Assembly (NCBI GenBank): GCA_002269645.1
Contig: NIVC01004658.1
Coordinates: 1-39,082, forward strand
Direction: 5' to 3'
Origin: Macrostomum lignano
Lineage: Eukaryota
Length of the DNA: 39,082 bases
The notes beneath the pieces were generated by a model. The model was not told the DNA's origin, searched no databases, and was given only the letters and a program-made list of their open reading frames with translations. Below, piece by piece: positions 6,801 to 27,989 of this stretch. A program made the position numbers and the translations under genes. Every line of letters starts with the position of its first letter. The stretch's first letter is position 1.

Positions 6801-6861
6801 GAGAGAGCATTTAATCCGACTGCAGTCTAATTAAAAATTGGTCAGGGGAGTTTAGGGCCTC

Positions 6862-7228
6862 CCAGAGAGTGACAGGGAAGGTGGGAGGAGAGTGGCAGGG
6901 GAGGCGGGAGGAGAATGGCAGGGGAGGTGGGAGGAGAGTGGCAGGGGAGGCGGGAGGAGAATGGCAGGGGAGGTGGGAGGAGAGTGGCAGGGGAGGCGGG
7001 AGGAGAATGGCAGGGGAGGCGGGAGGAGAATGACAGGGGAGGCGGGAGGAGAATGACAGGGGAGGCGGGAGGAGAATGACAGGGGAGGCGGGAGGAGAAT
7101 GATAGGGGAGGCGGGAGGAGTGACAGGGGAGGCGGGAGGAGAGGGACGGGAAAGCGGGAGGAGAGTGACAGGGAGGCGGGAGGAGAGTGACAGGGAGGCG
7201 GGTGAAGAGTGACAGGGGGAGGCGGGAC
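6862..7228. repeat. About 23-bp purine-rich minisatellite (GGCAGGGGAGGCGGGAGGAGAAT) just 3' of the SLC22 stop
   Basis: About 16 tandem units seen directly. Confidence 0.93.
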
Positions 7229-7248
7229 AGCAGTCAAGAGGCCCCAGC

Positions 7249-10200
7249 TCACGGTGTGATGATGTTGGCCTCCCTCACAGTCTGCGGCAGCGGGATGCCC
7301 TTGGTCTCTGGCAGGTAGTAGAGCGCGGCGCCGGCAAGAATGCCCAGGCAAGCGAATGCGATTGGGGCGGCCATCCGGGCGCCGTAGGAGCCGCCGCTGT
7401 TGACGGCCAGGATGAAGGGGGCCAGCAGGGAGGAGATGCGGCCGATGGCGCTGCAGAAGAAGATACCAGTGTTCCGGATCGAGGTCGGGTAGACCTCTGC
7501 TGTGTAGTTTGTGATGATTGAGAAAGCGCAAGTAGCTGACAGCTTGGCCAGAAGGGCGAGAACGGTGTGAGAGACGCTGCCTGTGAAAGAAGAGTCCGAT
7601 AAATATTTCAATATTTGATGAAGCAGAGCAGAAGAGAGCAAAAATATGGATGTTACACGGCCCGATGTAAATTTTTCTAGAATAGCTAAGACTTTTTTGA
7701 TACTGTAGCTTTATAGTGCTGTGGGACCTTGGCTACGAGCTGACTGACGCCTTGTCCAGAGAGCATGACTGACCCGGCCTCACGATGTCCTGCTGAGTTG
7801 TTAGATGCCGGCTGGGCAAGTGATCGGATTGGAGGCCTGCTGCCCTGAGCCTGTGCATGCAGGGACTGCGCAGACGTTGACAAGGACGCGGGAGTGGTTA
7901 CGTCATATAGTGACCTCGCCTTAAGGTGACGCAGCCTCCTTTTTTGACCGCGTGCGGCTGGCGGGCAAAAAAAATCATTGTTCAAGACGGGATATAGCCC
8001 AACACTGAGTTGGACGCGTCCTTATTTAGTACATAAAAACTTTTGAGATTTAGTTATATAGACTACAGAAAAGACAAGAAAGATCCGCACGGATGCAGCG
8101 GTCTATCCTATCTGTTACCGATGTCGAGATGCGATATGATTCACTTCACATTTTGCAACAATCTAATTATATCGAAAAGTATCTTGAAGGTCATTGAACC
8201 CTACTGGCAGGATTGCTCACCTGGAGTGAGCACAGCCACCGAGATTAGGCAGGCGCTAAGCATCGTGTATAAGACGGCAATGGGAATTCTGCGTCCGACT
8301 TTCTCGGCCACAATCCAGGCCGTGACGTAGGCCGGGACCTCGATCAAACCGGACAGGACGGTGTTTATGAAGACGTCGCTGGCCAGGAAATCAGAGTCCA
8401 GGGATATGCTGTTGTAGTTTAAACTGATTGCGAACCTGTGCAGGCGTGAGGAAGTAGGAGGCAAAATTCTCTAATTCGCTTCTTTTATTCTGTAAGCAGA
8501 GTGTCCCCATGGACTTTATCGAAGGGGGCAGAGCCTTATAACTATAATTAGCATTTCATACTGAGCATAGCAACCATTTTTCAGTAAATGTAGAACTTTT
8601 TACGCCATACGAGCGTACAGGCGATACCTAAAGATCCCTAAAGATTAAAGATCCTAAAGTCCCTAAAGTCCCTAAAGACGGATGGGACTAAAAGTTGCAA
8701 TAAATGTTAAATGTACATAGTATAAGCAGGTGCAAGACTTTGTCATTGTTAGAGCCAGTCATTATTTCGTGAAGCAACTAAGAAAACTAAGCATTAGCAT
8801 GTTCCCAAAACTTTTACTCGGGAGGATGGTCGTTTTTGCGACACCCCTGAAGTAGTGTAAGAATAAATCTTTTGTTCAACAAAAGCTACAAAATCTTATC
8901 CATCGCGATACATTTTCCATACTAGACTCACCAGGCGCAGAACAAAATGAGGGACTTTTTTAGCATTATCCGGGTCCTGAACATTTCCGAGACGTTGCCT
9001 TCGCGACTGTGCTCAGGTGGCTGCGAGGTCTGGAAGCCGTAGGTCTGCGGGTTGAGAGATGGTGGAATTTTACTTCAGTGCGGGGTTAACTTTAAACTGA
9101 GTCACTCATCGTAGGTCTCGCTGGACTCACCAGCAACTCCTTGGCAGCGGTCGGGATGGTCCGGCCGTTCACTCTGGCGATGTTTTCGCACACGTAGAGG
9201 GCGTCGGTATACCGGCCGTGGGCGATCAGCCAGCGCGGCGATTCCTGCAGAGACTGCAACGGTTGATCGGTTAATCAACGGTTAATCATTGACCTATTGT
9301 ATAAGAGTTAGAGTTGCATACATCTTAAGTTAGCTCTTGCTTTTCAAAGCTTGGAATCTAGGTCTTAATAATACAGTACACGTCTTCACGTCTGTAGTTT
9401 TTAGTCTGGCAAAAGTGTCCCACCAAGCCAAAGTTATCGTAGATTCGCTTCTGCACTCACAAGTAGCAGGCAATGTAAAAAAGGCAGGGCAGGCAGGTGA
9501 GCAGTTGCAGCCACCGCCACTGTCTCACTAGATAAGCCATACCGGCCACAGACATGTAGCCTAGACAATAGTACAGCCACAGTAAATTGGCGACCAAAGC
9601 TCTGTGCTTGCAGCCGACAAACTCGGTGATGCACACAGTGGACAGAAGATTAACTGTGGCGAAGATGCCGTGCGCAAAGTGCAGCCCCAGGTAGGAGAGG
9701 AAGTTCGGAGAGACGCTCTCCAGCAGAGTGAACAGGGCCTCCATCGCGCAGCTCACCAGCAGCACTGGTCGACGACCGAACCTGCGGTGGGGCAGCGTGG
9801 GTTGCACTCGGAGTGAGCTGGCAGGATGAGTAGTGGTTGATTTAGATGGGTCAGGGTGAGTCTTGGTGCATGCCAGGTTTAGTTTGACGGAACAATCAAT
9901 AAAGTTTGCGCTGTTATTCTTTAACTAGTCGTTCGATCTAGTTTTTAAGCCGTATTCTGATTTGAAGTGGGTACTTAAGCCCGCCCAATTGAACTGCTCA
10001 CTTGTCGGCAAAGATGCCCAGCACGACGCCGAAGCCGTAGCCGAGGGCGTAGCTGCCGAACACAAGCGGCTCCAGGCCTTGGCGCGACAGACAAGATCCC
10101 ACTGGGTGTGAGCGTAAATGGAAATAGATCGTTAATAAACACCTGAAAGCCATGTCTTTATCGCAGAATGTGACTGTTTACCTGCGTTGTAATTGTCTCC

Positions 10201-10538
10201 TTCCACTCGCTTTTATCGTAGGCAAACAGGGTGCACTGCTGCTGTTGCTGCTCCCCGGAAGTGCCATTTCGTGGCGGCGTGAACCAGCACTGGCTGTCCT
10301 GACCGCCTGTGGCTGAAGCGTTAACGATCTGCGCCCAGGTGGGGGGACTCTCCAGCCAGTTCGGGTAGGCCTGCTGGCACACGAACGCCGGTCGGACCAC
10401 GTGGAATACCGTAATGACCATGTTGGCAGCGGCCTTCCACGACAGCGAGGCGAGGAGGTTGAACAGCACGATCTGGTAGCGGCCAAGGCTGCCGATGTGT
10501 TCCAGGACCTCTTCGTACTCCATGTGCACGGGAGCCAT
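7249..10538 (-). CDS. SLC22: SLC22 organic cation/anion transporter (MFS), 7 exons
   Basis: Exons 10538-10182, 10101-10002, 9781-9461, 9253-9131, 9044-8932, 8435-8221, 7580-7249, all GT-AG. Family motifs: YEEVLEHIGSLGRYQ, WDLVC, D-K/R-FGRRP, ESPRWL, EKVGRR, AEVYPTSIRNTG, LPETKG. Two apparent 1-nt deletions (about 10077 and 9251) must be corrected to keep the frame. Confidence 0.93.
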
Positions 10539-11533
10539 GGCTCCGACCCTGCTCGCGGCTGATGCGGAGCTCTGTAAAGCTAGACTCGCGAACTGGTTCG
10601 CCGAATTTCCAGTCTCAATGCCGCAAGGAGAAAGCGAGGCTGCAGGCAGAGGCTGGCTGACTCACAAATTAAACGGGCCTAGTGATACAGCAGGGTAGGA
10701 ACTGTGGGGTACGCAGGGAGGGAGGCGTCCCTACAGCCGCTCAGGTAAGGAGGCTCCGACAGAGGCAGTGGAGGAGGAAGTTCAGAGCAAGCGATGCTGC
10801 AGAGGTGAGAGCGTACTCTCGGGGCTGAGTATCATGAGAAGGTAAAAGCCACGCTCTTCTGCTTGGGTTAGGACTGTACTCAGCAGCTGCTCTGTATGCC
10901 TCCCTCACAACCGAGAATTAGCGCGAAGCGGTGGGTCAGAGGCGAGGGGTGGGAGTCCAGGCGGGGACAGAAAAATCGATCTGTTTTAGCCCCTCTTGTC
11001 TCCCTCTCAACCCCAGTTTCTGCCGGTCTCCACGCGTTTGCATGGCTTCTAAAGCCAAGGCAGGGTAGGCTGGACTCTGTGACTTTTGCAGAGAGCTCTG
11101 AAGATAACAGCTGTTATATTTAGAAGTCTCTGGACTTTTGAAGGCCACGGAGAAAGGGAGTGAAACTAAAGACCGGGTGCACCCACGAATCCATTGTAGC
11201 TTTTATTGTTCGCAGCAACCATGCCTCGGCTTGTGAAACTGATGCTTGGATGGATACGAAGTCAATTCGCCGCTAAAATTTCTGTGTATGCCTGATCTAG
11301 CAAATCTAGCTTCTCTTGTGTACATAATTCTGATGCTATGATATGCAACCATAACTATTAAGCAGTCATTCTAAAATCGAATTCAGGAAATAAAAACAGA
11401 CTTTTTGACACAATTGCAAGCATTTTGTCGACCAAACCACTGTTACATGCCCGTAAAGTTTTAACAAACTAAAAATAACGCCACAAAGTGTATTTTGAAA
11501 TTAGCCTTTATCTACGTACGTATCTGCAGTTTG

Positions 11534-12022
11534 TCACACCATATCGTACAGGAAGGTGTACTGAAGGAGAATGGCCTCAGGCTCTGAAGGCAATCCGGAT
11601 GACAATCCAACCGAATCGATGCAGGTGTTGTTTGTATTGCAGTTGCTATTACTAACAGTAGTTGAATCGCGCAGCACTTGCAGTCTGGAATTGACTTGCG
11701 ACTCCAATCTGTGCCAATCCTGTCCCAGGGGCCAGTAGGGTAGCCGGTGGTTGCACCAGTTCACCTGCTGGTTGTCCTTAGACCGCTGCTCCAGGGTGGC
11801 ATCGTCGCCCGAGGCGGGCTTTCGCAGGCGCAGCAGCGCTGGCGGCGGCCTGTAGTTCGAGCGCGGCAGGGTGAAGACGCCGCGACGAAGAGAAATGGCG
11901 CTGTCGGCTCCCGGAGAGGAGTACAGGATGCGGACAAAGACTGCCGCCAACGCCCAGCCGATGATGACGCATACGGCAATGATGGACACAGTCAGGACCC
12001 ACAGAATTTGCTCTAGCGCCAT
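11534..12022 (-). CDS. Putative small single-pass membrane protein (162 aa ORF), no recognised family
   Basis: ATG-initiated ORF with an N-terminal hydrophobic segment (ILWVLTVSIIAVCVIIGWALAAVFVRIL) followed by a basic/polar tail; GC-rich island within AT-rich flanks. Confidence 0.5.
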   Translation of the reverse strand: MALEQILWVLTVSIIAVCVIIGWALAAVFVRILYSSPGADSAISLRRGVFTLPRSNYRPPPALLRLRKPASGDDATLEQRSKDNQQVNWCNHRLPYWPLGQDWHRLESQVNSRLQVLRDSTTVSNSNCNTNNTCIDSVGLSSGLPSEPEAILLQYTFLYDMV

Positions 12023-14550
12023 TGTAGCTGGTGTTTGCCTTACCTTGTTTGTCGAGAGCTACTGAGTACTTATAAACTCATAAAATCAGCTAAAAATCTC
12101 ATTCTTAGTTGATTCTATTTTAATCAGAGACCATAAAGTTAGACCATAGAAAAAATCAATCCTGCACGTTGAAGAGGGTTTTCCATTTCTAAAAATAGAT
12201 TTCAATCCTGTACCTTTTGATGTATTTGGACCTACTTCCAACTTCATGCTTGAGCGTGCAAGATTGTGGCCAATTCTGCACGCAAAATCAAATATGAATG
12301 CACAAGAACATAGATCGCAAAAAGATATTTAGTTTAAGCGAGTTTAGCGAGACAGGAGTACTATATATCTATTGCCTAGAAGATACATGTATATGGGGGT
12401 GAAGGGCACTGACCTGGAAATGAAGGGGGCGCACCCAGCGAGAGTCAGGGGGCGCAGCTATACCAAGTGGGGAGACCACCATAAGAAAAGAGAGAGATCG
12501 GTGCCAATGCCAACCAAGACACCGCCGGGCGCCCACCCGACATTTAGGAGATACACTAGCAATCAGCTGTGCCCCTGTTGGGAGCCAACAAAGAATGGAA
12601 AATTTTTTTGAATATACTACGTATAGATTCAGCATGACTTCAACCATGAAATCTCAGGAATTCCCCCCATGATTCCCTTGACATCTCAGCAATACATGTA
12701 CATGTACATTACGAGCGTAGGGCGTCCAATTAACGTACCAAGATACCAAATAATTGCACAATTAGGGTTGGGGAATTGCCCCCTCCAAATTTAAATTCCT
12801 GCGTATACATGCAGTTGTACATTACTGCAATCAAAGATGCAAGCACCACAAGACGTGGTTGGATGTATCAGGTACTTTTCAGCCTGACAATCTAAGGCTA
12901 AACATACATATATATAGGTACGGGTATACATGTACAGCTAGTACATACATTGACATGGTGTATAACCATACATGTTGTACATGTACATGTAACATATACA
13001 TGTAGCTTTGTCCTAATAGAAGCGTTTTTCTCTTCTGACATTGCATGTTAGGAAATTAGGAGCTACACGTATGTATTTTCATCCGAGATTAAAGAGGCTT
13101 TAAAAGCTGGATGGAGACCGACGACACAAAAATTCTGGGACCTGCCAATAAGACAATTGTCGTTGACAATTGTTAGGCAACACGAAAACTGTGTTTTCCG
13201 AACAGATTTCGCGGAGGACTTGTTTTTTGCAGTGCCTTAAGCACGCTCTTATTTAGACAAGAAGCTTGTCCGGCCGCCACAAGCGTAAATTTTAGCTAAA
13301 ATGACTGTTTTACTGCTCGCTGTTTTACACACCGTTAGATGTCGTCACTCATCGTTATAACAACGTGAGAGTTATAAGATTTTCTAATAAAACAGGGTAA
13401 TAGAGTATTTAAAACATAATCATAATTTCATAAAGTTAAGTTTTTGCTTGATACTCAAATTATTAACTAAAAACTAATTTTCTCGATCAGTTGTCATTAA
13501 TGATATTTTTCAAGTTGATGCCTTGTTTAGAAATCAGAATTTCTCTATTTTCGCTTTCAAATTGCAGGGACAGCGGGTGATTTTCAAAAATCATCCAAAT
13601 GGGTCCGACTCACCTAGCTTCTAGATAAAAAACACAATGTTGCCAATAAAATAGCGAAAAGATCAGATATTATGTTTTATAAAATAAGCTGAAAAGCCGT
13701 TGAAGTTGTTTTTTTTCAAAATTGAATTTTGAGTTAGGCCTATTAAAATAAAATATAACTAGAAATATATCTTACAAAGGAACCTAATAGTCTTACTAAA
13801 AAAGTATTTTTATGCAAACTTTTTAATCCCAATATCATAATTTTCATAGCATAGCCATAATTAGATATTTTTTAAGGAGGGATATCTTGTATCTAGTCTA
13901 TCTAACTTCTAAGAGATGAGGTAGGTTAGGTAGCATGCCTCTTTGAAAAACCCTAAATTGTTAATGGTTATCATTAAAGTTAATCTGACTTATCAAGTAT
14001 ATGTGGGTATATCTACTTTCTTCCCTATCCCCTTTACCATGTACCACTTGCAGTTGCAGTTTCAGTCTGGTATTTAATCTTATATAATGTATATAATAAT
14101 AATATTGAAACAAGTATATCTTTTAATTATGAGTAATTATTTATATTTTAGAATATAACAATAACAAACAAATAATTTGTTTATCCAATATAATAAAAAT
14201 TTATTTTAAGAATCAATCCACTTATAGTTATACTTATTATAATAATAGGTCCTGAGATTTTTTAATTTGAAAAATATGGAAATGTTTGCATTCTATTGTG
14301 TAGATCTTATTGAAAGGTTTTCAAATAAATTTAGTTCATGAAAATCAGACTAGGCATAAACAATGTCTTGACCATTTTATTGTCACAATTTCTTTGACTT
14401 TTGTAGTATATTTTCGTATAACTATAAGGACTATGATCATAATTAATATACACAATAATTGAATAAATTTATCAAAAAAGCAAGTCAAAATTTGTATGAA
14501 CATTTTAAAAAGAATAAAATAACAATTATAAATTAAGAAATAAATAGTAG

Positions 14551-16165
14551 ACAACAACAACAACAGAGTACGCTGCCAGTTCACAAAAGCAGCGTCAGAT
14601 GGCGCGCTTCAAAGCTTGGGTGCGAACAAAAGCCGCACCGCTGGCAGAGTCCGGAGCGCCGGCGTCAGCCAGCAGACAGTCGACGTAGCGCCGAGTCCTC
14701 GCCTGTCCCCGCCGGTAGGGTGCCTGCAACGTAAGTAGCAGCACCTCCTGCACCAGCTCCGGACAGTAGGCCTCGGCGCGGATGACGTGGCCTGCCAGCT
14801 GGAGTCGCCGACGGCGCAGCAGATCGCTAGGACGGGCCAGGCCGGCGCGATGATAGAGCGCCGTGTTGGTGACTCGCTCGTTGCCGATCTTGAAGGCGGC
14901 GCGCAGCAGGCCAGCGTGCGCCGCGTCGACTTGAGCCTCGAGCGAGTCTGTCAGCGTCCAGGTCTCGGCGTTGTATAACAGGACGGTCTCGATCACCGCC
15001 TGGAACAGCGCCGCCCTCTGGCGGTCCGGTAGGGCCTCGGACTGCAGGACTGACCTTATAGAACGAAAGGCAGCCCAAGCAAGTCCTCGGCGACGCCGCA
15101 GATCCTCGCGGACGTCGGGAACCAGACCGCCGAGGTAGACGAACTGCTGACATCTTGGAAGCTCACTCGCCTGTCCGTCAGCGCCTCGGCAGAAGATTGC
15201 AGCCTCGGTGTCGTCCGGCACGCATAGCACGACGGTCTTCTGCGTGTTGACCACCAGGCCGACGCTCGCCGCAACGGCAACCAGCCTATCCAGCTGTCGT
15301 TGGGCGCCCTCGACGGTCGAGGACAGCAGGGCGAGGTCATCGGCGTAGCCAAGCACGCTGAGCCGTCTCTCCGGTTGGCGTCGACCCACGCGTCGCCGCA
15401 GCAGGAAGCCGTCGTCGTTGGAAGGCAGAGCAGTCCGTAGCACCCAGTCAAGCACCAGAATAAATAGGAACGGCGCTAGCGTATCTCCCTGGAGCACCCC
15501 GGAGGATGTCTCGAAGAAATCCGATAGGCCGTCCGGTGTTGAGACAGCAGCCGTCGTGCCGTGGTACAGCGCCATGACAGCAGAAATCAGCAGCTCTGGC
15601 ACGTTGTACGCACGGAGCACCTCTGGGAGCGCGTCCCTCACGACCGAGTCGAAAGCCTTCCTGAAATCGACGAAGATCAGGATCAGGGTCAACTGGCGGA
15701 TGCGTGCCTCCTCGATGACTCGTCGAAGAGCCAGGATCTGCGTCACTGTGCCGCGATGGGGATTGGGGCCGGAATCCGTTCTGCTCAGGTCGCAGGTACG
15801 GGTCCAGCACAGGCTGTAACCGCGATAGCAGCATGCGGTTGAACAGCTTCGCGGCGCAGGACTGTAGGCAGATGCCTCGATGCTCCTCGAGCTTGGTGGT
15901 GCCCGGCTTCTTTGGAATGGCGACGATGTGCGCTGTGGTCCATTCGTTTGGCGCCACCTCACCGAAAAGCACGCGGTTCATCACTCTGGCGACCTCAGTG
16001 GCCATGCAGTGGATCCGCAGCGCCTCGGTGGGCACCTCGTCCGGACCAAGCGCTTTGCCGCCCGGCGACTGCCGAGCGAACTTCACAACGTCGGCTGTGC
16101 TGACTGGGGCAACATTGAAGCTCTCCTCCGCCGGCAACGGCGTCTCCGGCGGCAGCCTCAGATTT
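14551..16165 (-). mobile_element. 5'-truncated non-LTR retrotransposon (RTE-like LINE) with reverse transcriptase domain
   Basis: RT motifs: KALGPDEVP, IVAIPKKP, RGICL, PEQNGFRP, FVDFRKAFDSV, GVLQGDTLAPFLF, GYADDL, VNTQKT, YLG. ORF 15448-16137 joins ORF 14595-15760 across a 7-bp insertion. About 30-nt 3' UTR then a (GTT)n tail at 14551-14565. No endonuclease domain in view. GC-rich element in very AT-rich flanks. Confidence 0.93.
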
Positions 16166-16830
16166 TCTCAGATTTCTATGTAAAAGAACTAGAAGCAAGA
16201 TATTTTTTAATAAAAAAACGTTTAATAAATAGTTTTTAAAAATATTTTTATGTCTATGCTATGGTATTAAATGTTAACTTAGCATATTATACCTTTCAAC
16301 AATTTTTGCTTCACTATAAAGCATTTATTGTGCCTTTGAATTATCTCCTTTTTTCATATTCATTTTCTTCATTTTTAGGTATATACTTTGTGTTTCCAAT
16401 CTGGTAGAAATATATACATGATGTTGGGGGGCATGTGTAAAAAATAATGCACAAAAATAAGGGCAGCAAAATACTTGTAAAACAATCTGGTGGTTTACTT
16501 ATAACTAATAAGTCTAACAAATTACTATTTGCATTCTTTTTTAATTAAATAATTTTATATATTCAATACTAATAGACTACATTAGCTAGCATATAAATTT
16601 GTAGACATTGCTTTGGGCTTTTAATTATTCTATTAGCAAGCCATTAATCAATTTTCCTGAGTTTAAATAAAACATAGGTTAGCTATGGCCTATGGCCTAG
16701 TTGCATTTCTACTAACTATTTGCCACTTTAAAAGGTGGCCTGCATCTGCATGTTAAAAGACCATCTTTTTATGGACTGTGCATTGGCTTTTCTGGAATTC
16801 AGCCATCTAGTCTAGTCTTCTATTTTACAG

Positions 16831-19800
16831 CTGGAGCCTCCCAGTCCCACCGCAGCTTCCAAGGGCGTTGCTGCTGACTGGTGGCCAGCTGTCTCATCGG
16901 CCGCGGCCCGCCTTGAAGCTGCCATCAAGTCAGGCGACGCCGAGGAGGCAGCTCGCCAAGCGCGGCTGCTCTGCGAACGGCGCGTCCAGCTGGACATCCG
17001 GCCTGCGCCGCCTCCGCTGGCGATGCCGCAGCAGCAGGAAGAATCGCCAGTGGTCGCGCGGCGGTCGCTGCTGGATGACGGCTGGTTCGCCCTGCCGGTA
17101 GCCCTGGAGGGCCGCGGCCGGCCGCGCCAGCTGCTCCGCTTGATGGCGCGCGGCGACACTCGGATTGGCGAGCTGCGGGCCCGGGTGGCGGCTCGAGCTC
17201 GGGACCTACCGCCCGGACGGCAGTGCTGGATCGCAGGCGGGCTGCTGGCTTCTGACGACAGGTGATTTTTTCTCGCCTGCTGCTACCCTTCTAGGTCCTC
17301 AGTTGCTGGGCCAGCCTCCCAGATCCTCATTTGCAGGGCCAGCCTCCCAGATCCTCAGCTGCTGGGCCAGCCTCCCAGATCATCAGTTGCTGGGCCAGCC
17401 TCCCAGATCCTCAGCTGCTGAGCCAGCCTCCCAGATCCTCATTTGCAGGGCCAGCCTCCCAGATCCTCAGTTGCTGGGCCAGCCTCCCAGATCCTCAGTT
17501 GCTGGGCCAGCCCCCCAGATCCTCAGTTGCTGGGCCAGCCTCCCAGATCCTCAGTTGCTGGGCCAGCCTCCCAGATCCTCAGTTGCTGGGCCACGCTTCA
17601 TTTTTTGATTCCAACCACGCAAAACTCCGTCATCATCGTTGCTTCCCAGGTGCTTAAAAGATCTCGGGGCGGTCAGCGAGACTCAGCCGGTGCACCTGTA
17701 CGTGCTCGGCGATCCGCAGCCCGCAGCGGCGCCAGAAGCTCCACCAGCAGAAGAGGATGCTGAGCCAAGTCCAGCTGTGCCCGCGGCAACGGTGCCCGTT
17801 GCCATGGAGCCTGTGGTAAGTGGATGGAAAAGCAGTTGAGCGTATTAGTACTGGCTAGATATGCACAGTGTAAGGCCTGCATGCCTGACTAGGCAAGCAA
17901 TAAGAGATTCGCTTTACATTCTGTTCTTACTACTCTTCAGTAGGCGATCGACTACAATTGATTGATTCTGGTACCCACCACCCCCATGACAGGCCGAGCA
18001 GCCGCAGCGCACCTGGGACTGCCCGGTGTGCACCTTCAGGAACAGGTGGCGCCGACCCGGCTGCGAAATGTGCGCCACTGAGCGGCCCGAATCGGCGCCC
18101 TCGTCCGGGGCGTCTTCGGACGAAAAAGGCAGCGGCTTGCAGAGCAGAGAGTCGCCTGGACAGCGGCGCAGAGGCCACATTGGGGGGCTGTTCCGAGTGC
18201 TTCGGCCGGTGCCGGCTGCGAAACAGCGGCAGCAGCAGCGGCAGCAGCAGACGGGCAGCGGCGGCAGGAGAATCTGCTACAGTCGGGATTTCCTGCTGTC
18301 CCTGCAGAACTGCCCGCTGGCCGCCGGGAAGCCCGGGGACCTGCCGCGCGAGTTGCTGCGATCGCAGGTGCGAGTTGAAGTAAAAATATCAAACTATTGA
18401 TAATATTCGCAGGAGGACTGTAGGCTCAGTCAATCCTGTATTGGTGTGAGGAGTGCTGAGTCAGTGCTGTATTGATGTGAGGAGTGCTCAGTCAATCCTG
18501 TATTGATGTGAGGAGTGCTCAGTCAGTGCTGTATTGATGTGAGGAGTGCTCAGTCAATCCTGTATTGATGTGAGGAGTGCTCAGTCAGTGCTGTATTGAT
18601 GTGAGGAGTGCTCAGTCAATCCTGTATTGATGTGAGGAGTGCTCAGTCAGTGCTGTATTGATGTGAGGAGTGCTCAGTCAATCCTGTATTGATGTGAGGA
18701 GTGCTGAGTCAATCCTGTATTGATGTGAGGAGTGCTCAGTCAATCCTGTATTGATGTGAGGAGTGCTCAGTCAGTGCTGTATTGATGTGAGGAGTGCTCA
18801 GTCAATCCTGTATTGATGTGAGGAGTGCTCAGTCAGTGCTGTATTGATGTGAGGAGTGCTCAGTCAGTGCTGTATTGATGTGAGGAGTGCTCAGTCAATC
18901 CTGTATTGATGTGAGGAGTGCTGAGTCAATCCTGTATCGATGTGAGGAGTGCTCAGTCAATCCTGTATTGCTGTGAGGAGTGCTGAGTCAGTGCTGTATT
19001 GATGTGAGGAGTGCTCAGTCAATCCTGTATCGATGTGAGGAGTGCTCAGTCAATACCTACTTTCAAAAGTTGCCAATCAGCCTCCCTTTACTCCTTTGGC
19101 AGAAGCCTCCCAGGCTCCCAGTGGCGGGAGTCACCAGCCAGATGAATTATGCGCAGCCGCCTCTCCAGCTGCCATTTGCGGCCAGAAAGCGCCCGCCCCG
19201 CGGCCTGGTTGCATCACGGTCGGGCGCAAAGCAGACAGTCGGGCACAGGAGACCGGCGCAGCCTCCTCCGTGTTTGCAGCTCGTTCAGGACGGCAGCTCT
19301 TCGTCTGTGAGTGATAGTGGATTGCTAGTCTAGTCACAGTGGATTGCTAGTCTATTCACAGTGGATTGCTAGTCTAGTCACAGTGGATTGCTAGTCTAGT
19401 CACAGTGGATTGCTAGTCTATTCACAGTGGATTGCTAGTCTAGTCATAGTGGATTGCTAGTCTATTCACAGAGGAATGCTAGTCTATTCACAGTGGATTG
19501 CTAGTCTAGTCACAGTGGATTGCTAGTCTAGTCACAGTGGATTGCTAGTCTATTCACAGTGGATTGCTAGTCTAGTCATAGTGGATTGCTAGTCTATTCA
19601 CAGTGGATTGCTAGTCTAGTCATAGTGGATTGCTAGTCTATTCACAGAGGAATGCTAGTCTATTCACAGTGGATTGCTAGTCTAGTCACAGTGGATTGCT
19701 AGTCTAGTCACAGTGGATTGCTAGTCTATTCACAGTGGATTGCTAGTCTAGTCACAGTGGATTGCTAGTCTAATCACAGTGGATTGCTAGTCTAGTCACA

Positions 19801-20080
19801 GTGGATTGCTAGTCTATTCACAGTGGATTGCTAGTCTAGTCATAGTGGATTGCTAGTCTATTCACAGTGGATTGCTAGTCTATTCACAGTGGATTGCTAG
19901 TCTAGTCACAGTGGATTGCTAGTCTATTCACAGTGGATTGCTAGTCTAGTCACAGTGGATTGCTAGTCTAGTCACAGTGGATTGCTAGTCTAGTCACAGT
20001 GGATTGCTAGTCCATTCGAAGTCTCGGACTCAGAGTAATTTATCATATTTGTGTTGTCCCGCCTGAAATTGCAGGACTGA
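16831..20080 (+). CDS. SHARPIN: SHARPIN-like LUBAC subunit (LTM-UBL-NZF) with C-terminal extension; 5' exon(s) not found
   Basis: Exons 16831-17261, 17650-17815, 17993-18367, 19103-19306, then 20075-20080 (GAC TGA) or an alternative acceptor near 20260. LTM-like AARLEAAIKSGDAEEAARQARLLCERRVQLDI; UBL ending LPPGRQCWIAGGLLASDDR/CLKDLGAVSETQPVHLYVL; NZF WDCPVCTFRN...PGCEMCATERP (recalled human SHARPIN WSCPSCTFIN...PGCEMCSTQRP). No RBR in these exons. Confidence 0.78.
17290..17592. repeat. 28-bp minisatellite (GCTGGGCCAGCCTCCCAGATCCTCAGTT), about 11 copies, intron 17262-17649
   Basis: Tandem units seen directly. Confidence 0.95.
18263..18346 (+). other. eIF4E-binding (4E-BP-like) motif inside exon 3 of the SHARPIN-like gene
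   Basis: In-frame GRRICYSRDFLLSLQNCPLAAGKPGDLP contains canonical YxxxxL-phi and extends the match to the 4E-BP segment RIIYDRKFL....NSP.....P.DLP. Confidence 0.7.
18420..19052. repeat. 31-bp minisatellite (GAGGAGTGCTCAGTCAATCCTGTATTGATGT), about 20 copies, intron 18368-19102
   Basis: Tandem units seen directly. Confidence 0.96.
19312..20015. repeat. 22-bp minisatellite (CACAGTGGATTGCTAGTCTAGT), about 32 copies, intron 19307-20074
   Basis: Tandem units seen directly; begins about 5 nt after the GT donor. Confidence 0.96.
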
Positions 20081-20304
20081 TGGCACACGAGGAACAGCCG
20101 CTTGTCAACTGCGATTCGCAATTCCAGTTCTTATTCACTTTGATTTTTTTCAGCTCTGCGATTTGCCATTTTTAATGTTTGATTTGTAGTGTAAATAATT
20201 ACAATTTCTTATTTTTCTTATTTCCTAGTTTTTTATTATTATTTTCAAAAATTTTAGCAGATGGACGCTGCTCTGGTGCCGCTTTTGTACCAGTTAGACA
20301 GAAT

Positions 20305-20705
20305 GCCTCTGTAACACCTGTTAGACACATCTGCCAGAAACTCTGTAACACCTGTTAGACACATCTGCCAGAAACTCTGTAACACCTGTTAGACACATCT
20401 GCCAGAAACTCTGTAACACCTGTTAGACACATCTCCTAGAAACTCTGTAACACCTGTTAGACACATCTCCTAGAAACTCTGTAACACCTGTTAGACACAT
20501 CTCCCAGAAACTCTGTAACACCTGTTAGACATCTCCTAGAAACTCTGTAACACCTGTTAGACACATCTCCTAGAAACTCTGTAACACCTGTTAGACACAT
20601 CTCCCAGAAACTCTGTAACACCTGTTAGATATAACCCCTGTAACACCTGTTAGACATAACCCCTGTAACACCTGCTTGACAGAATAAGCTGTTACTGTAA
20701 CGCCT
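20305..20705. repeat. 34-bp minisatellite (CTCTGTAACACCTGTTAGACACATCTGCCAGAAA), about 10 copies plus degenerate tail
   Basis: Tandem units seen directly. Confidence 0.93.
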
Positions 20706-21039
20706 GTTCGCCTATAACAGCAGCCGTATGCACAGCCTCCCAATTATTGAATGCCAGGTAGAAAGGTGCGCTGGTGTTTTGATCTATTCATCCATAAATA
20801 ACATCCTTGAACATGATTTCGTGTCATCTGACAGTCCAAATCTCATCGCGTTTTTTATCGCCTTGCTCGTGCTATTTTAGCCAGATATTTTATTGAGGTT
20901 AAGGTAACCTACTTTTAACAATGTTGCATCGCACATCCAGTGTAGTCAATAAATTTTATATACATACTCTTTTATAACTAACAAAGCTAAAAACGGCATA
21001 CTTTTGTCTGTTCAGTTTGTTAGCACCATCAGCGAAGGA

Positions 21040-21680
21040 TCAGAAACCACCCTGAAAATCACTCAGAAACCACCCTGAGAATCACTCAGAAACCACCCTG
21101 AGAATCACTCAGAAACCACCCTGAGAATCACTCAGAAACCACTCTGAGAATCACTCAGAAACCACCCTGAGAATCACTCAGAAACCACCCTGAGAATCAC
21201 TCAGAAACCACCCTGAGAATCACTCAGAAACCACTCTGAGAATCACTCAGAAACCACCCTGAGAATCACTCAGAAACCACCCTGAGAATCACTCAGAAAC
21301 CACCCCGAGAACCGCCCAGAAACCCTGAAAACCACCAAGAAACCCTGAGAACCACCAAGAAACCCTGAGAACCGCCCAGAAACCCTGAGAACCACCAAGA
21401 AACCCTGAGAACCACCAAGAAACCCTGAGAACCGCCCAGAAACCCTGAGAACCACCAAGAAACCCTGAGAACCGCCCAGAAACCCTGAGAACCACCAAGA
21501 AACCCTGAGAACCACCAAGAAACCCTGAGAACCACCAAGAAACCCTGAGAACCGCCAAGAAACGCTGAGAACCGCCAAGAAACCCCGAGAACCGCCTTGA
21601 GAACCCCCCTGAGAACCGCCAAAAAAACCCTGAGAACCGCCCAGAAACCCCAAGAACCGCCCAGAAATCCTGAGAACTGC
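21040..21680. repeat. Composite minisatellite: 23-bp (GAGAATCACTCAGAAACCACCCT) switching to related 20-bp (GAGAACCACCAAGAAACCCT) unit
   Basis: Tandem units seen directly; ends about 70 nt before the HOIL-1 ATG. Confidence 0.94.
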
Positions 21681-21750
21681 TCCAAAACGAGAAGCAGGTC
21701 AGAATGCAGCAGGAAAACCGCATTTATTGCATGCTGATCTCCGCCTCGCC

Positions 21751-24700
21751 ATGTCGACGGTGCCCGCCGGTGTCCGGCGCCTCTCCGAGAACTTCAACGC
21801 CGCTCTGTCGGAGCGCAACGTAGACAAGGCGCAGCGCCTGGCAGCGGAGCTCGCCAACTCCCGGCTGTTCAGCCTGCGCGCCTACGCTGAACCCGAGGGC
21901 GCCGCGACCTCCTCCGGTGGCGCCCTGCCTGAGGAGAGCCTGCTGGTGTCGCTGACGCTGCAGGCTGGTGGCTCTCGCTCCTGCGGCCCGCTGCGCCTCG
22001 TCATGCCGCGGACCGCCTGCATCGCCGACCTGAAGGACGAGACGCTGTTGGTTTTCGGCCTGCCGCCCGCGATTCAGCGGTGCATGGCTGATGGCCAGCT
22101 GCTGGGCAATGAGAGGATTTTTGATGAGCTCACCAAGACTAAGGAGCTCAAGGTTGGGGACTGCGGAACTGCTAAAGCTGACTGATCCCATGATGATGCT
22201 GGCTGTGTGATCCCATGATGATGCTGGCTGTGTGATCCCATGATGATGCTGGCTGTGTGATCCCATGATGATGCTGGCTGTGTGATCCCATGATGATGCT
22301 GGCTGTGTGATCCCATGATGATGCTGGCTGTGTGATCCCATGATGATGCTGATGTGTGATCTCATGATGATGCTGGTGTGTGTGATCCCATGATGATGCT
22401 GATGTGTATGATCCCATGATGATGCTGTTGTGTTTGATCTCATGATGATGCTCAGTGTGTGATCCCATGATGCTCAGTATGCGATCCCATGATGATGCTG
22501 AGTGTTTGTCCTCAAAGTGGACCTGGAGCATGCCAAATCTGTTTATTCCCCAATCTCTCAGGTGCTGACCTACCTGGTTACATCGAATCCTGAGCACTGG
22601 CCACCAAAGAAGGATCATCTTGAGCAGCTGAAGGCGGCTGTACGGGCCGAGCGGGACCGGCAGGTCATCCGCCGGGAGGATTCCGAATACGATGAAGGCT
22701 CTGCAGGATCTGTAGGGCCGTCGCAGCCGCAGCAGCCTGAGGTTGAAGAAGAAGTGAGTGACTCAAATAGCTCACTTCATTAAATCTCAGAATTCACATC
22801 CTTTGATGTGTGCCGCCATCTCGATTTGCATCCTTTGATGTGTGCCGCCATCTCGATTTGCATCCTTTGATGTGTGCCGCTATCTCGATTTGCATCCTTT
22901 GATGTGTGCCGCCATCTCGATTTGCATCCTTTGATGTGTGCCGCTATCTCGATTTGCATCCTTTGATGTGTGCCGCCATCTCGATTTGCATCCTTTGATG
23001 TGTGCCGCTATCTCGATTTGCATCCTTTGATGTGTGCTGCCATTTCGATTTGTATCCTTTGATGTGTGCCGCCATCTCGATTTGCATCCTTTGATGTGTG
23101 CCGCCATCTCGATTTGCATCCTTTGATGTGTGCCGCTATCTCGATTTGCATCCTTTGATGTGTGCCGCCATCTCGATTTGCATCCTTTGATGTGTGCCGC
23201 TATCTCGATTTGCATCCTTTGATGTGTGCCGCCATCTCGATTTGCATCCTTTGATGTGTGCCGCTATCTCGATTTGCATCCTTTGATGTGTGCCGCCATC
23301 TCGATTTGCATCCTTTGATGTGTGCCGCCATCTCGATTTGCATCCTTTGATGTGTGCCGCCATCTCGATTTGCATCCTTTGATTTGTGCCGCCATCTCGA
23401 TTTGCATCCTTTGATGCATGTCACCATTCAGGATTCTTTGATGTGGACCGCCACTTAAGATCCTTTGATCTGTGCCGCCATTTTAGAAGAATCATTTGTT
23501 GTGTGCCGCCATTTTAGAATCCTTTAATGTGTGCACCATTTCAGAATCATTTGATGTGTGCCGCCATTTCAGAATCCTTTAATGTGTGCCATCATCTCAG
23601 AATTCGCATCCTTTAATGTGTCACGTTACCGTCGCCTTCTCCGCCCTCTCCGCCCCCGCAGCCAGGCTGGAGCTGTCCCAAGTGCACCTTCCGCAACGAG
23701 CCGGTGCGGCCCGGCTGCCAGATGTGCGGTGGGGCGCGGCCGCCCGACTACGAGGTGCCGGCGGAGCTGCAGGCAGAAGAGGAGCAGCGGCAGCTGAAGC
23801 TGCACGGCGAATTTCTTAAATTCGTGAGTTGCGAGTCCCTGCTTTGTCTTAATGTTCTATGGGCTGATTTCTTGCTGCATGTGAACAATTGTAGGCCGGG
23901 GCAAGGGTAGAATAGCTGGGGCAGGGGTAGAATAGCTGTGGCAGGGGTAGAATAGCTGTGGCAGGGGTAGATTAGCTGGGGCAGGGGTAGAATAGCTGGG
24001 GCAGGGGTAGAATAGCTGTGGCAGGGGTAGATTAGCTGTGGCAGGGGTAGATTAGCTGTGGCTGGGTAGAATAGCTGTGGCAGCGGTAGATTAGCTGGGG
24101 CAGGGGTAGATTAGCTGTGGCAGGGGTAGATTAGCTGTGGCTGGGGTAGATTAGCTGTGGCTGGGGTAGATTAGCTGTGGCAGGGGTAGAATAGCTGTGG
24201 CAGCGGTAGATTAGCTGGGGCAGGGGTAGATTAGCTGTGGCAGGGGTAGATTAGCTGTGGCTGGGGTAGATTAGCTGTGGCAGGGGTAGAATAGCTGTGG
24301 CTGGGGTAGATTAGCTGTGGCTGGGGTAGATTAGCTGTGGCTGGGGTAGATTAGCTGTGGCAGGGGTAGAATAGCTGTGGCAGCGGTAGATTAGCTGGGG
24401 CAGGGGTAGATTAGCTGTGGCAGGGGTAGATTAGCTGTGGCAGGGGTAGATTAGCTGTGGCAGGGGTAGAATAGCTGTGGCAGCGGTAGATTAGCTGGGG
24501 CAGGGGTAGATTAGCTGGGGCAGGGGTAGATTAGCTGTGGCAGGGGTAGATTAGCTGTGGCAGGGGTAGATTAGCTGTGGCAGGGGTAGATTAGCTGTGG
24601 CAGGGGTAGATTAGCTGTGGCAGGGGTAGAATAGCTGGGGCAGGGTTAGATTACCTGGGGCAGGGGTAGTGACCCAAGCAGCCAATCAGAAGCCTGAAAA

Positions 24701-27700
24701 GCTAGATTGCCAGCCAATCAGCGATCGAGCTCCGCGACTAAGCTGAGAGCCGAGCGGCAGAACTGCACTGTTTTGTACATGCGCTTTTAAAAAGTGGAAA
24801 TGTTTTGTTAAGCAAGGCAAATGCGGGGCCAAGTCAGACCAGCGCAACCGATCCCACAGAGAGCTACATTGAGACACCGGGCTCTGAGGAACCCGATGAC
24901 CGCCGCCGCCGCGGATTCCAGCAGCAGCGACTCGGATGATGAAGAGAACAAGGCGGATGAACCTAGCGAAGCTGCTGATCCATAGTGTTCCACTACCTCA
25001 TTGGAATCTTATTGAACTTCTTTTACATTTGGCATTGTGATAGCACTGTGACAATATGCCCTAAGATGCGTTCCGATTCCCTGTCACCGGTGTACTGATA
25101 TCTGAGATCACCTGTTCACCCGTATCTTAATATCTGAGATCACCTGTTCACCGGTATCTTAATATCTGAGATCACCTGTTCACCGGTATCTTAATATCTG
25201 AGATCACCTGTCACTGGTGTCCTAATATCTGAGCTCACCTGTTCACAGGTGTCCTGATATCTGAGATCACCTGTTCACCGGTATCCTAATATCTGAGATC
25301 ACCTGTTCACCGGTATCCTAATATCTGAGATCACCTGTTCACAGGTGTCCTGATATCTGCGATCACGTGTTCACAGGTGTCCTGATATCTGCGATCACGT
25401 GTTCACAGGTGTCCTGATATCTGAGATCACCTGTCACCGGTGTCCTGATAGCGCTAAGATTCCCTGTTTCTGGAAATCAGCTTCTGTAAATCGTGTACAC
25501 TATTTCTCGAATCTTTTATTTACTATTATCTCTTATCATTTTCTTTGCTTGCCATGCGGTTATCCAGTGTTTTTATTTCTTTCCAAAGTGGATATTGTCC
25601 CCACTTGGCCAATAGCTGCCTAATTTCCTAGCAAAAATTTTAGACACGTTTGATAATCCGTGAAATATAAAACAGATTTTTTGGTCAAAGAGATTTTTCT
25701 CTCAAGAAATACCTAATACGAAACCTCTGCTATTCTTCACAGGCATTAATTTATTGTTTGACAATGAACGGCTGACTGCACGGATCCAGGCAGGCTGGCT
25801 GACTTCTCAAATTTGCCTTTATCGGTTGGACTGATGATGTGAATTTCCAATATTGCACCGTTACCAGGAATCTTGCTGATTGACCTCTCGGAATACGCTC
25901 GGAGCGACTTTCCAGAGACACAGTGACGGAGTGACTTTCCAGGGACACAGTGACGGAGCGACTTTCCAGAGACACAGTGACGAAGTGACTTTCCAGAGAC
26001 ACAGTGACAAGAGTGACTTTCCAGAAACACAGTGAGGGAGTGACTTTCCAGGGACACAGTGACAAGAGTGAATTTCCAGGGACACAGTGACGGAGTGACT
26101 TTCCAGGGACACAGTGACGGAGTGACTTTCCAGAGACACAGTGACGAAGTGACTTTCCAGGAACACAGTGACAAGAGTGAATTTCCAGGGACACAGTGAC
26201 CGCTATTTAAATGCCGAAAGTGTGCCTGAAGGGCAGGAAAGACTGGAAGCCCGCTGGCTTAGTTTACATTAATGCGGCACTGGGGTTGGGCCTAAAGTAC
26301 ACCTGCAGGCAGTCGCACGGTGGGAAGCCGGAATCCTCATCAATCAGAATTGCCCCCCCCCCCTGTTGCGCAATCTGCAGACCGAGCGGGAGCGCGAGCG
26401 CAACTTCCGCGAGCTCATGAACCTGACGCAGGGCTCGCTGATCCCCGTGCCGGCGCAGCAGGGCTTCGAGTGCCCGATCTGCCTCTGCGACGTTGGCGGC
26501 GACGATGACGACGGCGACGGCATCCGGGGCCTGCGGCTGCGCGAGTGCGGCCACGAGGTCTGCGAGAACTGCCTGAGGGACCACGCGCTCAACTCCGACC
26601 GGCTGCCCGTCATCTGCCCGTGCGAGCCGTGCCAGCAGACTGTCACCGAGGCCGAGCTCAAGGAGCTGCTCACCGATGAGCAGCTGGCCAGGCTGCAGCG
26701 GCTGGGGCTCCGCCAGGCCGAGGCCGTCATCACCAACGCCTTCCACTGCGTGACGCCAAACTGCGAGGCATTCGTTGAACTGGTGGACAATGTTAACGAG
26801 TTTGAGTGCGAGGTGTGCCAGGAGCACAACTGCGTCACCTGCAGGGCCTCCCACAAGGACCTCACCTGCCAGCAATACCAGGACGACCTGCGCAGGCGCG
26901 CTGAGAACGACGAGAATGCCAAGCTGGGACTGCAGAAACTGGAGGTGAGTGATTGAGTGACACCTTGGCTGATTGAGTGACACCTTGGCTGATTGAGTGA
27001 CACCTTGGCTGATTGAGTGACACTATTGGCTGATTGAGTGACACTATTGGCTGATTGAGTGACACCCTTGGCTGATTGAGTGACACCTTGGCTGATTGAG
27101 TGACACCCTTGGCTGATTGAGTGACACCCTTGGCTGATTGAGTGACACCCTTGGCTGATTGAGTGACAGCCTTGGCTGATTGAGTGACACCCTTGGCTGA
27201 TTGAGTGACACTGACTGATTGAGTGACACCTTGGCTGATTGAGTGACACCTTGGCTGATTGAGTGACACTATTGGCTGATTGAGTGACAGCCTTGGCTGA
27301 TTGAGTGACACCTTGGCTGATTGAGTGACAGCCTTGGCTGATTGAGTGACACCCTTGGCTGATTGAGTGACACTGACTGATTGAGTGACACCTTGGCTGA
27401 TTGAGTGACACCTTGGCTGATTGAGTGACACTATTGGCTGATTGAGTGACAGCCTTGGCTGATTGAGTGACACCTTGGCTGATTGAGTGACAGCCTTGGC
27501 TGATTGAGTGACACCCTTGGCTGATTGAGTGACACTGACTGATTGAGTGACACCTTGGCTGATTGAGTGACACCTTGGCTGATTGAGTGACACTATTGGC
27601 TGATTGGGTGACAGCCTTGCCTGATTGAGTGACACCTTGGCTGATTGAGTGACACCCATGACTGATTGAGTGACACTGACTGATTGAGTGACACCATGTG

Positions 27701-27989
27701 TAAAGTTTATAGGATAGCAGACTAACTGCAACTGGTTTCCCACTGTCACTCCCGAATCGTGCAGGACATGCTGCAGTCCGGAGAGGCCAAGAAGTGCCCC
27801 AAATGCCAGGTGTTTCTCTCCAAGCGCGAAGGCTGCGACTGGCTGATGTGCTCCGTGTGCCGCACCGAGATCTGCTGGGCCACCCGCGGCCCGCGCTGGG
27901 GACCCGGCGGCCAGGGTGACACCTCTGGCGGCTGCCGCTGCCGGGTGAACAACAAGAAGTGCCACCCGAACTGCATGAACTGCCATTAG
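21751..27989 (+). CDS. RBCK1: HOIL-1L / RBCK1 RBR E3 ubiquitin ligase, 514 aa, 5 exons
   Basis: Exons 21751-22152, 22562-22753, 23662-23823, 26381-26944, 27765-27989, all phase 0 with GT-AG. LTM plus UBL; [24 protein letters not shown]...PPDYEVP; RING1 CPIC...[12 protein letters not shown]; [11 protein letters not shown]...VNEFECEVC; RING2 CPKC...[53 protein letters not shown]-stop, the diagnostic HOIL-1L C-terminus. Confidence 0.96.
22183..22502. repeat. 25-bp minisatellite (TGTGATCCCATGATGATGCTGGCTG), about 13 copies, intron 22153-22561
   Basis: Tandem units seen directly. Confidence 0.95.
22795..23620. repeat. 32-bp minisatellite (CATCCTTTGATGTGTGCCGCCATCTCGATTTG), about 20 near-perfect copies plus degenerate 3' copies, intron 22754-23661
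   Basis: Tandem units seen directly. Confidence 0.96.
23895..24670. repeat. 20-bp G-rich minisatellite (GGCAGGGGTAGATTAGCTGT), about 38 copies
   Basis: Tandem units seen directly, in HOIL-1 intron 23824-26380. Confidence 0.96.
25095..25445. repeat. 32-bp minisatellite (ATATCTGAGATCACCTGTTCACCGGTATCTTA), about 11 copies
   Basis: Tandem units seen directly. Confidence 0.93.
25903..26200. repeat. 27-bp minisatellite (GACTTTCCAGGGACACAGTGACGGAGT), about 11 copies
   Basis: Tandem units seen directly. Confidence 0.93.
26951..27695. repeat. 20-21-bp minisatellite (GATTGAGTGACACCTTGGCT), about 36 copies, intron 26945-27764
   Basis: Tandem units seen directly; starts immediately after GTGAGT donor. 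Confidence 0.96.

Follow-up and report, generated by a model that had tools for sequence, protein, structure and literature searches.

A putative eIF4E-binding core of 4E-BP type in the tail of a SHARPIN/HOIL-1-like protein of Macrostomum lignano

Can a 4E-BP be removed from mTOR control and built into a ubiquitin adaptor? The question is raised by a gene on contig NIVC01004658.1 of Macrostomum lignano (assembly GCA_002269645.1), the analyzed stretch of which, 39,082 nucleotides in all, we refer to as the window. Textbooks present the 4E-BPs as what connects mTOR to cap-dependent translation, and SHARPIN and HOIL-1 as the accessory subunits of LUBAC, the ligase that makes linear ubiquitin chains. 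The gene in question, here called the fusion gene, lies at 16831–20080 on the forward strand and encodes a protein of 393 residues with an LTM-UBL-NZF architecture of the HOIL-1/SHARPIN type, followed by a disordered tail that contains a 4E-BP-type module. The best-supported reading is that of a lineage-restricted chimera: an adaptor of the SHARPIN/HOIL-1 type has acquired a tail derived from a 4E-BP, and this tail, to judge from its residues, is competent for eIF4E binding and stripped of mTORC1 control. Both halves come from well-known families; their combination is undescribed in the sequence libraries and the literature that we searched.

The module was first noticed as GRRICYSRDFLLSLQNCPLAAGKPGDLP, and its assignment to 18263–18346 on the forward strand, in the same exon and frame as the NZF, is an exact translation. 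The initial annotation had counted 13 gap-free identities over 28 positions with human 4E-BP1, a figure that HMMER also gives against the PDB chains 5bxv_B, 8rch_Z and 6bcu_X, and had proposed that the likeness runs well beyond the seven-residue core, which is borne out by four lines of comparison. First, the module matches positions 42–74 of the Pfam profile PF05456 (eIF_4EBP), with E-values of 2.1e-5 for a 38-residue peptide, 2.8e-5 for the tail, 5.1e-5 for the exon peptide (the family-profile search that the initial annotation had suggested) and 1.7e-4 for the whole protein; the corresponding scores are 24.4–24.8 bits for peptide and tail, 23.6 for the exon and 21.9 for the whole protein, set against a gathering score of 24. 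Second, an exhaustive phmmer search of 1.84 billion (1.84e9) representative proteins with the whole protein found two small 4E-BPs (P0102 and P0105) at E 3.4e-4 and 3.6e-4, solely via residues 282–320. Third, the module shares 18/30 identities (BLASTP, E 5e-10) with the canonical M. lignano 4E-BP (P0166, BOX15_Mlig006102g1), the product of a separate, single-exon gene (L002, 6001–6459) with TTPGGT repeats and a FEMDI ending. Fourth, a ten-sequence MAFFT alignment of the module with nine 4E-BPs has the invariant pattern G..Y.R.FL...P.A...P..LP...GVT. On these comparisons the likeness is true homology to the eIF4E-binding core of 4E-BPs and not a chance match to a short motif.

The 4E-binding region of eIF4G (YDREFLLGFQ...KPEGLP) was considered as a relative and rejected. 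PDB searches with E-values up to 10 returned 4E-BP1 and Thor and no eIF4G chain, and hence 4E-BP is the better relative. In a separate observation, P0102, P0105 and P0147–P0150 (JGI/Logan contigs) are 4E-BPs of 123–165 residues with two tandem eIF4E-binding modules per chain, and the second of these modules resembles the window module no less closely than the M. lignano 4E-BP does.

The residues retained by the tail are those expected at the contact with eIF4E (Table 1). If the Gly-Val-Thr part is included, the 4E-BP-like span runs over residues 290–336 of this multidomain protein. In an AlphaFold2 (AF2) model, for which the input was a 19-sequence alignment, a helix at residues 297–304 coincides with the canonical motif and the rest of the tail is predicted to be disordered. 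A gap-free alignment pairs RICYSRDFLLSLQNCPLAAGKPGDLPRELLRS with the peptide of Drosophila Thor crystallized in complex with eIF4E (4UE8_B), placing Leu320-Leu321-Arg on Thor Leu79-Leu80-Arg. The non-canonical motif of Thor has been experimentally defined as Cys78, Leu79 and Leu80, and non-canonical motifs lie ~15–29 residues past the canonical one (PMC4164784). The candidates in the window, which are recognized at the level of sequence only, are Leu320-Leu321, 19–20 residues downstream, or Ala-Gly-Val-Thr ten further. The latter belongs to Pro-Val-Ala-Gly-Val-Thr-Ser (19118–19138, in exon 4), which in the MAFFT alignment falls on the Ile-Pro-Gly-Val-Thr motif of 4E-BPs. Compared with canonical 4E-BPs, the stretch from Leu-Pro-Arg to Gly-Val-Thr is longer by an insertion of ten residues, which is interrupted by an intron and is not devoid of features, as the alignment of Leu320-Leu321-Arg with Thor shows.

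What the tail has lost is of a different kind. Neither the HMMER nor the MAFFT alignment finds in the module an equivalent of Thr37, the Thr-Pro sites of Thr46 and Thr70, or RAIP. The protein ends ...DGSSSSD, and the MAFFT alignment places no FEMDI-type ending on it; all of the nine aligned 4E-BPs (9/9) end in a TOS-type motif with Phe first and Met or Leu third (FEMDI, FDMDI, FHMEM etc.). The initial annotation had read the Ser65-Pro and Thr70-Pro sites as Cys-Pro and Lys-Pro. The first of these stands, as Ser65-Pro66 falls on Cys-Pro, but the second does not, since the HMMER alignment puts Thr70-Pro71 on Gly-Lys and Lys-Pro on Pro71-Pro72. The absence of the mTORC1 Thr-Pro sites holds despite this one-residue shift. 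The Cys had been counted among the replaced mTOR phosphosites, but it is not peculiar to the fusion: the canonical M. lignano 4E-BP likewise reads Asp-Cys-Pro-Leu, keeping Thr37, Thr46, Thr70 and the FEMDI TOS yet having Cys at the Ser65 site. By this comparison, Cys at position 65 is a trait of the lineage and not a change made in the fusion. As far as the alignments go, the pattern is a selective one, in which residues that contact eIF4E are kept and features that serve kinase input are removed. As a minor observation, the +2 frame of the exon 5 region (20075–20170, forward strand) reads ...EEQPLVNCDSQFQFLF..., a faint echo of the (D/E)xQF start of a TOS ending. That frame is reachable only via an alternative donor 4 nucleotides downstream (19310/19311), and the resemblance to TOS is probably a coincidence.

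The front half of the protein resembles the accessory subunits of LUBAC. Pfam PF25393 matches the LTM over residues 25–60 with an E-value of 3.4e-6 (27.3 bits, cut-off 27.5). The AF2 model is confident for the helices at 14–49, the UBL at 85–163 and the NZF at 201–230; by the predicted local distance difference test (pLDDT), the LTM helices (14–34 and 37–49) score >90 and the NZF 86–93. Foldseek matches the LTM region to 5y3t_A (E 1.2e-8) and 5y3t_C (E 7e-6), and the UBL to the HOIL-1L UBL 4dbg_A (template modeling [TM] score 0.83) and to 5x0w (TM 0.77–0.83). These top matches are the LTM-UBL structures of HOIL-1L and SHARPIN. A PDB sequence search finds the same families, the LTM-UBL of Sharpin (5y3t_C) at E 1e-3 and that of HOIL-1 (5y3t_A) at E 0.02. 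The fold predicted for the UBL thus matches the HOIP-binding type. The NZF is recognized in Pfam (PF00641, E 3.6e-6; Zn_ribbon_RanBP, E 1e-5), has the HOIL-1 NZF (3b08_B) as its closest PDB match in a sequence search (E 2.5e-7), and by homology would bind ubiquitin. The RBR domain (RING1-IBR-RING2) is not in the fusion gene, which ends at 20080. The label "SHARPIN-like" given by the initial annotation is therefore apt for the order LTM-UBL-NZF, but less so in two other respects, in that no PH domain was found and the NZF is nearest to that of HOIL-1. We regard the protein, from its sequence relationships, as a SHARPIN-like paralogue of the HOIL-1 gene next to it, not as a demonstrated SHARPIN orthologue.

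Are the two halves truly one product? A five-exon model with GT-AG at every junction yields the protein of 393 residues, which matches GenBank PAA46902.1 from end to end with 100% identity, a record titled "hypothetical protein BOX15_Mlig004010g1, partial" with an annotated coding sequence of exactly 16831–20080. The annotation behind this record drew on RNA-seq and on assembled transcriptomes from which the spliced leader had been trimmed, its boundaries were placed at mapped spliced-leader and poly(A) sites, and the TBONE pipeline used for it splits transcripts at mapped spliced-leader sites (PMC5730564). Because the annotation was guided by RNA-seq and our model is identical to it, the splice pattern of the exon at 17993–18367, on which the initial annotation had made its proposal depend, is the transcript-supported one. 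The frame of this exon is limited by an in-frame stop at 17987, the AG acceptor ending at 17992 and the GT donor at 18368. Within it, the NZF match ends at Pro231 and the 4E-BP-type motif starts at Gly290, 59 residues on, and the interval contains neither an intron nor an in-frame ATG.

The trans-splicing habit of this animal invites a rival explanation, namely that the fusion is an effect of isoforms or annotation and that the NZF and 4E-BP parts are separate products, made through an internal spliced-leader acceptor, the AUG of which would open a free-standing 4E-BP-like peptide, or by splicing that skips the motif. In M. lignano, trans-splicing affects ~30%–39% of genes, and multi-gene precursors make up ~7% of the transcripts assembled for the annotation (PMC5730564; PMC8629364); a spliced leader brings its own AUG; and ab initio models from the older assembly splice the region otherwise, one of them (P0004) jumping from the NZF to exon 4. 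Yet TBONE cuts at spliced-leader sites, and the same single open reading frame of 393 residues was nevertheless retained in the annotation of two independent contigs, with no intron or in-frame ATG to separate NZF from motif, and the models of the P0004 type are ab initio and full of frameshifts. We consider separate products very improbable.

Table 1. Coordinates of features of the fusion gene and its neighbor in the window, and correspondence of the module to human 4E-BP1 in the HMMER alignment
Feature	Position	Strand	Description
AG acceptor	16829–16830	+	Immediately 5' of the annotated coding-sequence start; candidate spliced-leader trans-splice site
Exon 1	16831–17261	+	Residues 1–144: LTM helices, first part of UBL
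Exon 2	17650–17815	+	Residues 144–199: end of UBL and Pro/Ala-rich linker; UBL strands reach residue 163
Exon 3	17993–18367	+	Residues 200–324, 375 bases: NZF, 58-residue linker, 4E-BP-type module
NZF (RanBP2-type)	18014–18088	+	Residues 207–231, WDCPVCTFRNRWRRPGCEMC, Thr-Phe ... Met ubiquitin-binding signature
4E-BP-type module	18263–18361	+	Residues 290–322; aligns with 4E-BP1 residues 45–77
Canonical motif Tyr295-x4-Leu300-Leu301	18278–18298	+	Tyr295-Ser-Arg-Asp-Phe-Leu-Leu; aligns to 4E-BP1 Tyr54...Leu59-Met60
Elbow Gln-Asn-Cys-Pro	within 18263–18361	+	Asn-x-Pro elbow of module
Candidate non-canonical motif Leu-Pro-Arg-Glu-Leu-Leu-Arg	18341–18361	+	Thor-like Leu-Leu-Arg
Exon 4	19103–19306	+	Residues 325–392: disordered tail
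Exon 5	20075–20080	+	Final codon Asp393 and TGA stop; no TOS motif
HOIL-1/RBCK1 orthologue	21745–27989	+	516 residues; LTM-UBL, NZF (23662–23742), RBR
4E-BP1 Thr46			Gly in window
4E-BP1 Tyr54			Tyr295 in window
4E-BP1 Arg56; Phe58			Arg; Phe in window
4E-BP1 Leu59-Met60			Leu-Leu in window
4E-BP1 Asn64; Ser65; Pro66			Asn; Cys; Pro in window
4E-BP1 Thr70; Pro71; Pro72			Gly; Lys; Pro in window
4E-BP1 Asp74-Leu75-Pro76			Asp-Leu-Pro in window

The beginning of the protein bears on its completeness, given the word "partial" in the GenBank title. The first base of the coding sequence (16831) directly follows ttttacag. An in-frame stop at 16813 closes off the frame upstream, and the first ATG comes no earlier than 17023; yet the LTM homology already begins at residue 25 of the protein. 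The M. lignano spliced leader is 35 nucleotides long with the 3' end ...TTGCATG (PMC8629364), and the 3'-terminal AUG of flatworm spliced leaders can act as initiator, according to Cheng et al. (2006), as cited in PMC12582326. Trans-splicing at 16830/16831 would set the leader ATG in frame with CTG GAG CCT. The acceptor at this place is probably a spliced-leader trans-splice site, and the leader AUG may serve as the start codon. The protein would then be complete except for a leader-encoded Met and, if so, would have no PH domain.

A second copy of the locus in the Mlig_3_7 assembly (L001, NIVC01003120.1) encodes an identical protein. It is identical to the window over 16709–18420, introns included, and every difference lies upstream of 16708. 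An argument for selection from this copy was dropped for want of any contrast in divergence between exon and intron. The models of the older ML2 assembly (P0001 and P0003–P0006) represent a diverged copy riddled with frameshifts; a frame-aware comparison suggests that the motif persists while the linkers vary, and in three of them (P0001, P0003 and P0005) the linkers are altered (LQSRESP to LDSREPT, HIGG to HNEG) and RRICYSRDFLLS and VAGVTSQMNYA are kept, although ML2 is error-prone and the evidence accordingly weak. A word-indexed search together with the exhaustive phmmer search found no protein outside Macrostomum with an NZF plus the module. The literature searched contains nothing on Mlig004010 and nothing on a direct link between SHARPIN or LUBAC and eIF4E.

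Taken together, we think it probable on balance that the chimeric gene is real and that its tail is a functional element for binding a member of the eIF4E family, as homology would predict. Several observations weigh against this. The eIF_4EBP scores are borderline (21.9–24.8 bits around the gathering score of 24), and those of the LTM and NZF in Pfam are slightly below their respective cut-offs. A tblastn search of the window with three SHARPINs gave no match of any kind upstream of the LTM, in keeping with a protein that has no PH domain. None of the 128 library-wide matches combines an NZF with the 4E-BP module outside M. lignano; among 138 NZF proteins retrieved, only M. lignano models carry the module; and a scan of metagenomes found NZFs alone, with no module. 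As the introns of L001 are as identical as its exons, no constraint can be read from the second copy.

Much the same evidence may be put to another use. The tail could be a decaying relic, a copy of a 4E-BP that became attached downstream of the NZF within the Macrostomum lineage and now drifts without function, recognizable only because it is young. An architecture seen in M. lignano alone, a borderline eIF_4EBP score and the lack of evidence for purifying selection from L001 all agree with this, as do the loss of the Thr-Pro sites, RAIP and TOS and the 10-residue insertion before Gly-Val-Thr; moreover, the intact canonical 4E-BP (P0166) elsewhere in the genome would make such a copy redundant. 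This redundancy and the insertion also tell against a functional tail. The losses are selective, however: each position known to touch eIF4E has been kept (Tyr, Arg+2, Phe+4, Leu-Leu, the Asn-x-Pro elbow and, at the spacing seen in Thor, a hydrophobic element), and just the features of kinase input are gone. With only 60% core identity to the 4E-BP of its own species the tail is not very young, yet its frame is open to the stop. The ML2 models, for what an error-prone assembly is worth, change the linkers and retain RRICYSRDFLLS and VAGVTSQMNYA. A relic seems to us unlikely.

If the tail is indeed functional, how would the protein work? The front half is an adaptor without a catalytic domain, consisting of LTM, UBL and an NZF predicted to bind ubiquitin. 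The back half, predicted to be intrinsically disordered, goes back to a 4E-BP gene and keeps the eIF4E-binding region in what appears to be its bipartite form. Most likely, the tail would occupy both the dorsal and the lateral surface of eIF4E in competition with eIF4G, as a constitutive, mTOR-insensitive 4E-BP. Through its LTM-UBL part the protein would be tied to HOIL-1 and HOIP, and through the NZF to ubiquitin chains; association with HOIP, HOIL-1 and LUBAC is what homology suggests for the fusion protein. The outcome would be either that the cap-binding protein is brought to the ubiquitin machinery or that repression is placed under ubiquitin instead of mTOR control. The full proposal, that a SHARPIN-type subunit with a constitutive eIF4E-binding tail couples a LUBAC-like complex (HOIL-1/HOIP) to the cap-binding protein, is more doubtful than the function of the tail, less likely than not, and is put forward tentatively. 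Were it true, cap-dependent translation would have a branch of control that depends on ubiquitin and not on mTOR, or else there would be a route for ubiquitinating eIF4E and capped messenger ribonucleoproteins, in either case arisen by fusion of two otherwise unrelated regulators.

The module may also be functional in some other role, with a different partner in the eIF4E family (4EHP-like, or a germline paralogue), or as a degron or substrate-recognition tail for ubiquitination of the fusion protein itself by HOIL-1/LUBAC. Flatworms are generally known to have several eIF4E-family proteins. The 4EHP-specific motif of the GIGYF type is Tyr-x-Tyr-x4-Leu-hydrophobic; the window reads Ile-Cys-Tyr, without the extra Tyr, and the nearest relatives of the module are ordinary 4E-BPs. 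On the other side, HHARI, an RBR ligase, has 4EHP of the eIF4E family as a binding partner and ubiquitination substrate (PMC3940038), and HOIL-1 has recently been tied to the ubiquitination of PABPC1 and the ribosome (PMC13179138). We rate such a role as quite improbable.

For a functional, eIF4E-directed tail on a ubiquitin adaptor, known systems offer partial parallels. The 4E-BP family (human 4E-BP1–3 and Drosophila Thor) shares with the tail the eIF4E-binding core, the disorder and the short helix on the canonical motif, but its members are small stand-alone proteins (about 100–160 residues), whereas here the core is part of the C-terminal tail of a 393-residue LTM-UBL-NZF protein, has no RAIP, Thr37/46/70 Thr-Pro sites or TOS, and has the 10-residue insertion before Gly-Val-Thr. 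SHARPIN, the non-catalytic LUBAC subunit, is similar in its domain order LTM-UBL-NZF, its want of an RBR and its pairing with a HOIL-1 gene. It differs in its N-terminal PH domain, none having been found in the fusion protein, whose NZF is in addition nearest to HOIL-1, and in what follows the NZF: the fusion protein has a tail of ~160 residues carrying the 4E-BP module, and the earlier claim that vertebrate SHARPIN ends soon after the NZF and has no known motif of this kind agrees with bat SHARPIN (P0048), which ends ~40 residues after its NZF and is motif-free. HOIL-1/RBCK1 provides the best structural and sequence matches for the LTM-UBL and NZF (5y3t_A, 4dbg_A and 3b08_B), and both genes in the window have a phase-0 intron shortly before the NZF; unlike HOIL-1, the fusion protein has no RBR, and it is just 32% identical to the true HOIL-1 adjoining it. 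The modular eIF4E-binding proteins (4E-T, Cup, Mextli, GIGYF1/2 and Angel1) likewise embed a short canonical plus non-canonical region in a larger protein through which some other activity reaches the cap (PMC4164784; general knowledge), but they are not known to carry ubiquitin-like or ubiquitin-binding domains, and the module in the window derives from a bona fide 4E-BP and not from an independently evolved motif. With HHARI (ARIH1) and 4EHP there is already a case of an RBR-ligase system engaging a cap-binding protein of the eIF4E family, with the difference that contact is made via RING1 of the ligase and not by a Tyr-x4-Leu-hydrophobic motif on an adaptor subunit (PMC3940038). If the tail binds eIF4E, it would represent a natural experiment in which a 4E-BP was moved from mTOR to ubiquitin control, and would join recent signs that the translation machinery is a target of ligases of the HOIL-1 type (PABPC1 and the ribosome; HHARI and 4EHP). 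If it is inert, the gene is only a curiosity of lineage-specific gene fusion. M. lignano is tractable by RNA interference, transgenesis and in situ hybridization, which makes the idea directly testable.

The neighborhood of the fusion gene includes a likely partner for its product. The HOIL-1 gene stands in tandem, 1.7 kb downstream, so that two LTM-bearing paralogues adjoin; the RING2 of the downstream gene matches human RBCK1 with an E-value of 1e-36. The N-terminal parts of the two genes are 32% identical over 124 residues. An origin of the fusion gene as a recent duplicate of the adjoining HOIL-1 was considered and rejected on this figure, which instead makes the fusion gene an old paralogue and not a recent partial duplicate. 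In front of the HOIL-1 gene, at 21722–21733 on the forward strand, lies a 12-nucleotide stretch, ATTTATTGCATG, that exactly matches the 3'-terminal part of the M. lignano spliced leader; it is 12 nucleotides before the annotated gene start and 18 before the ATG. The chance expectation is 0.02 per window, and both genomic copies have it (L001, 16474–16485). No GT donor follows this stretch, and it is therefore not a spliced-leader RNA gene.

Upstream, a retroelement with reverse transcriptase occupies 14552–16176 (reverse-transcriptase open reading frames on the reverse strand, 14598–16167), ~0.65 kb before exon 1. It is missing from the otherwise collinear contig L001 and is thus a copy-specific insertion. 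Further upstream are a small open reading frame with a predicted membrane segment (11537–12058, reverse strand) and a gene of the MFS/sugar-transporter type (Pfam Sugar_tr and MFS_1; 6831–10661, reverse strand). Minisatellites fill most of introns 1–3 of the fusion gene (17296–17593, 18424–19054 and 19316–20012), each intron with an array of its own, in units of 28, 31 and 22 bp and 10–32 copies; similar arrays are found at 20307–21677 and elsewhere in the window.

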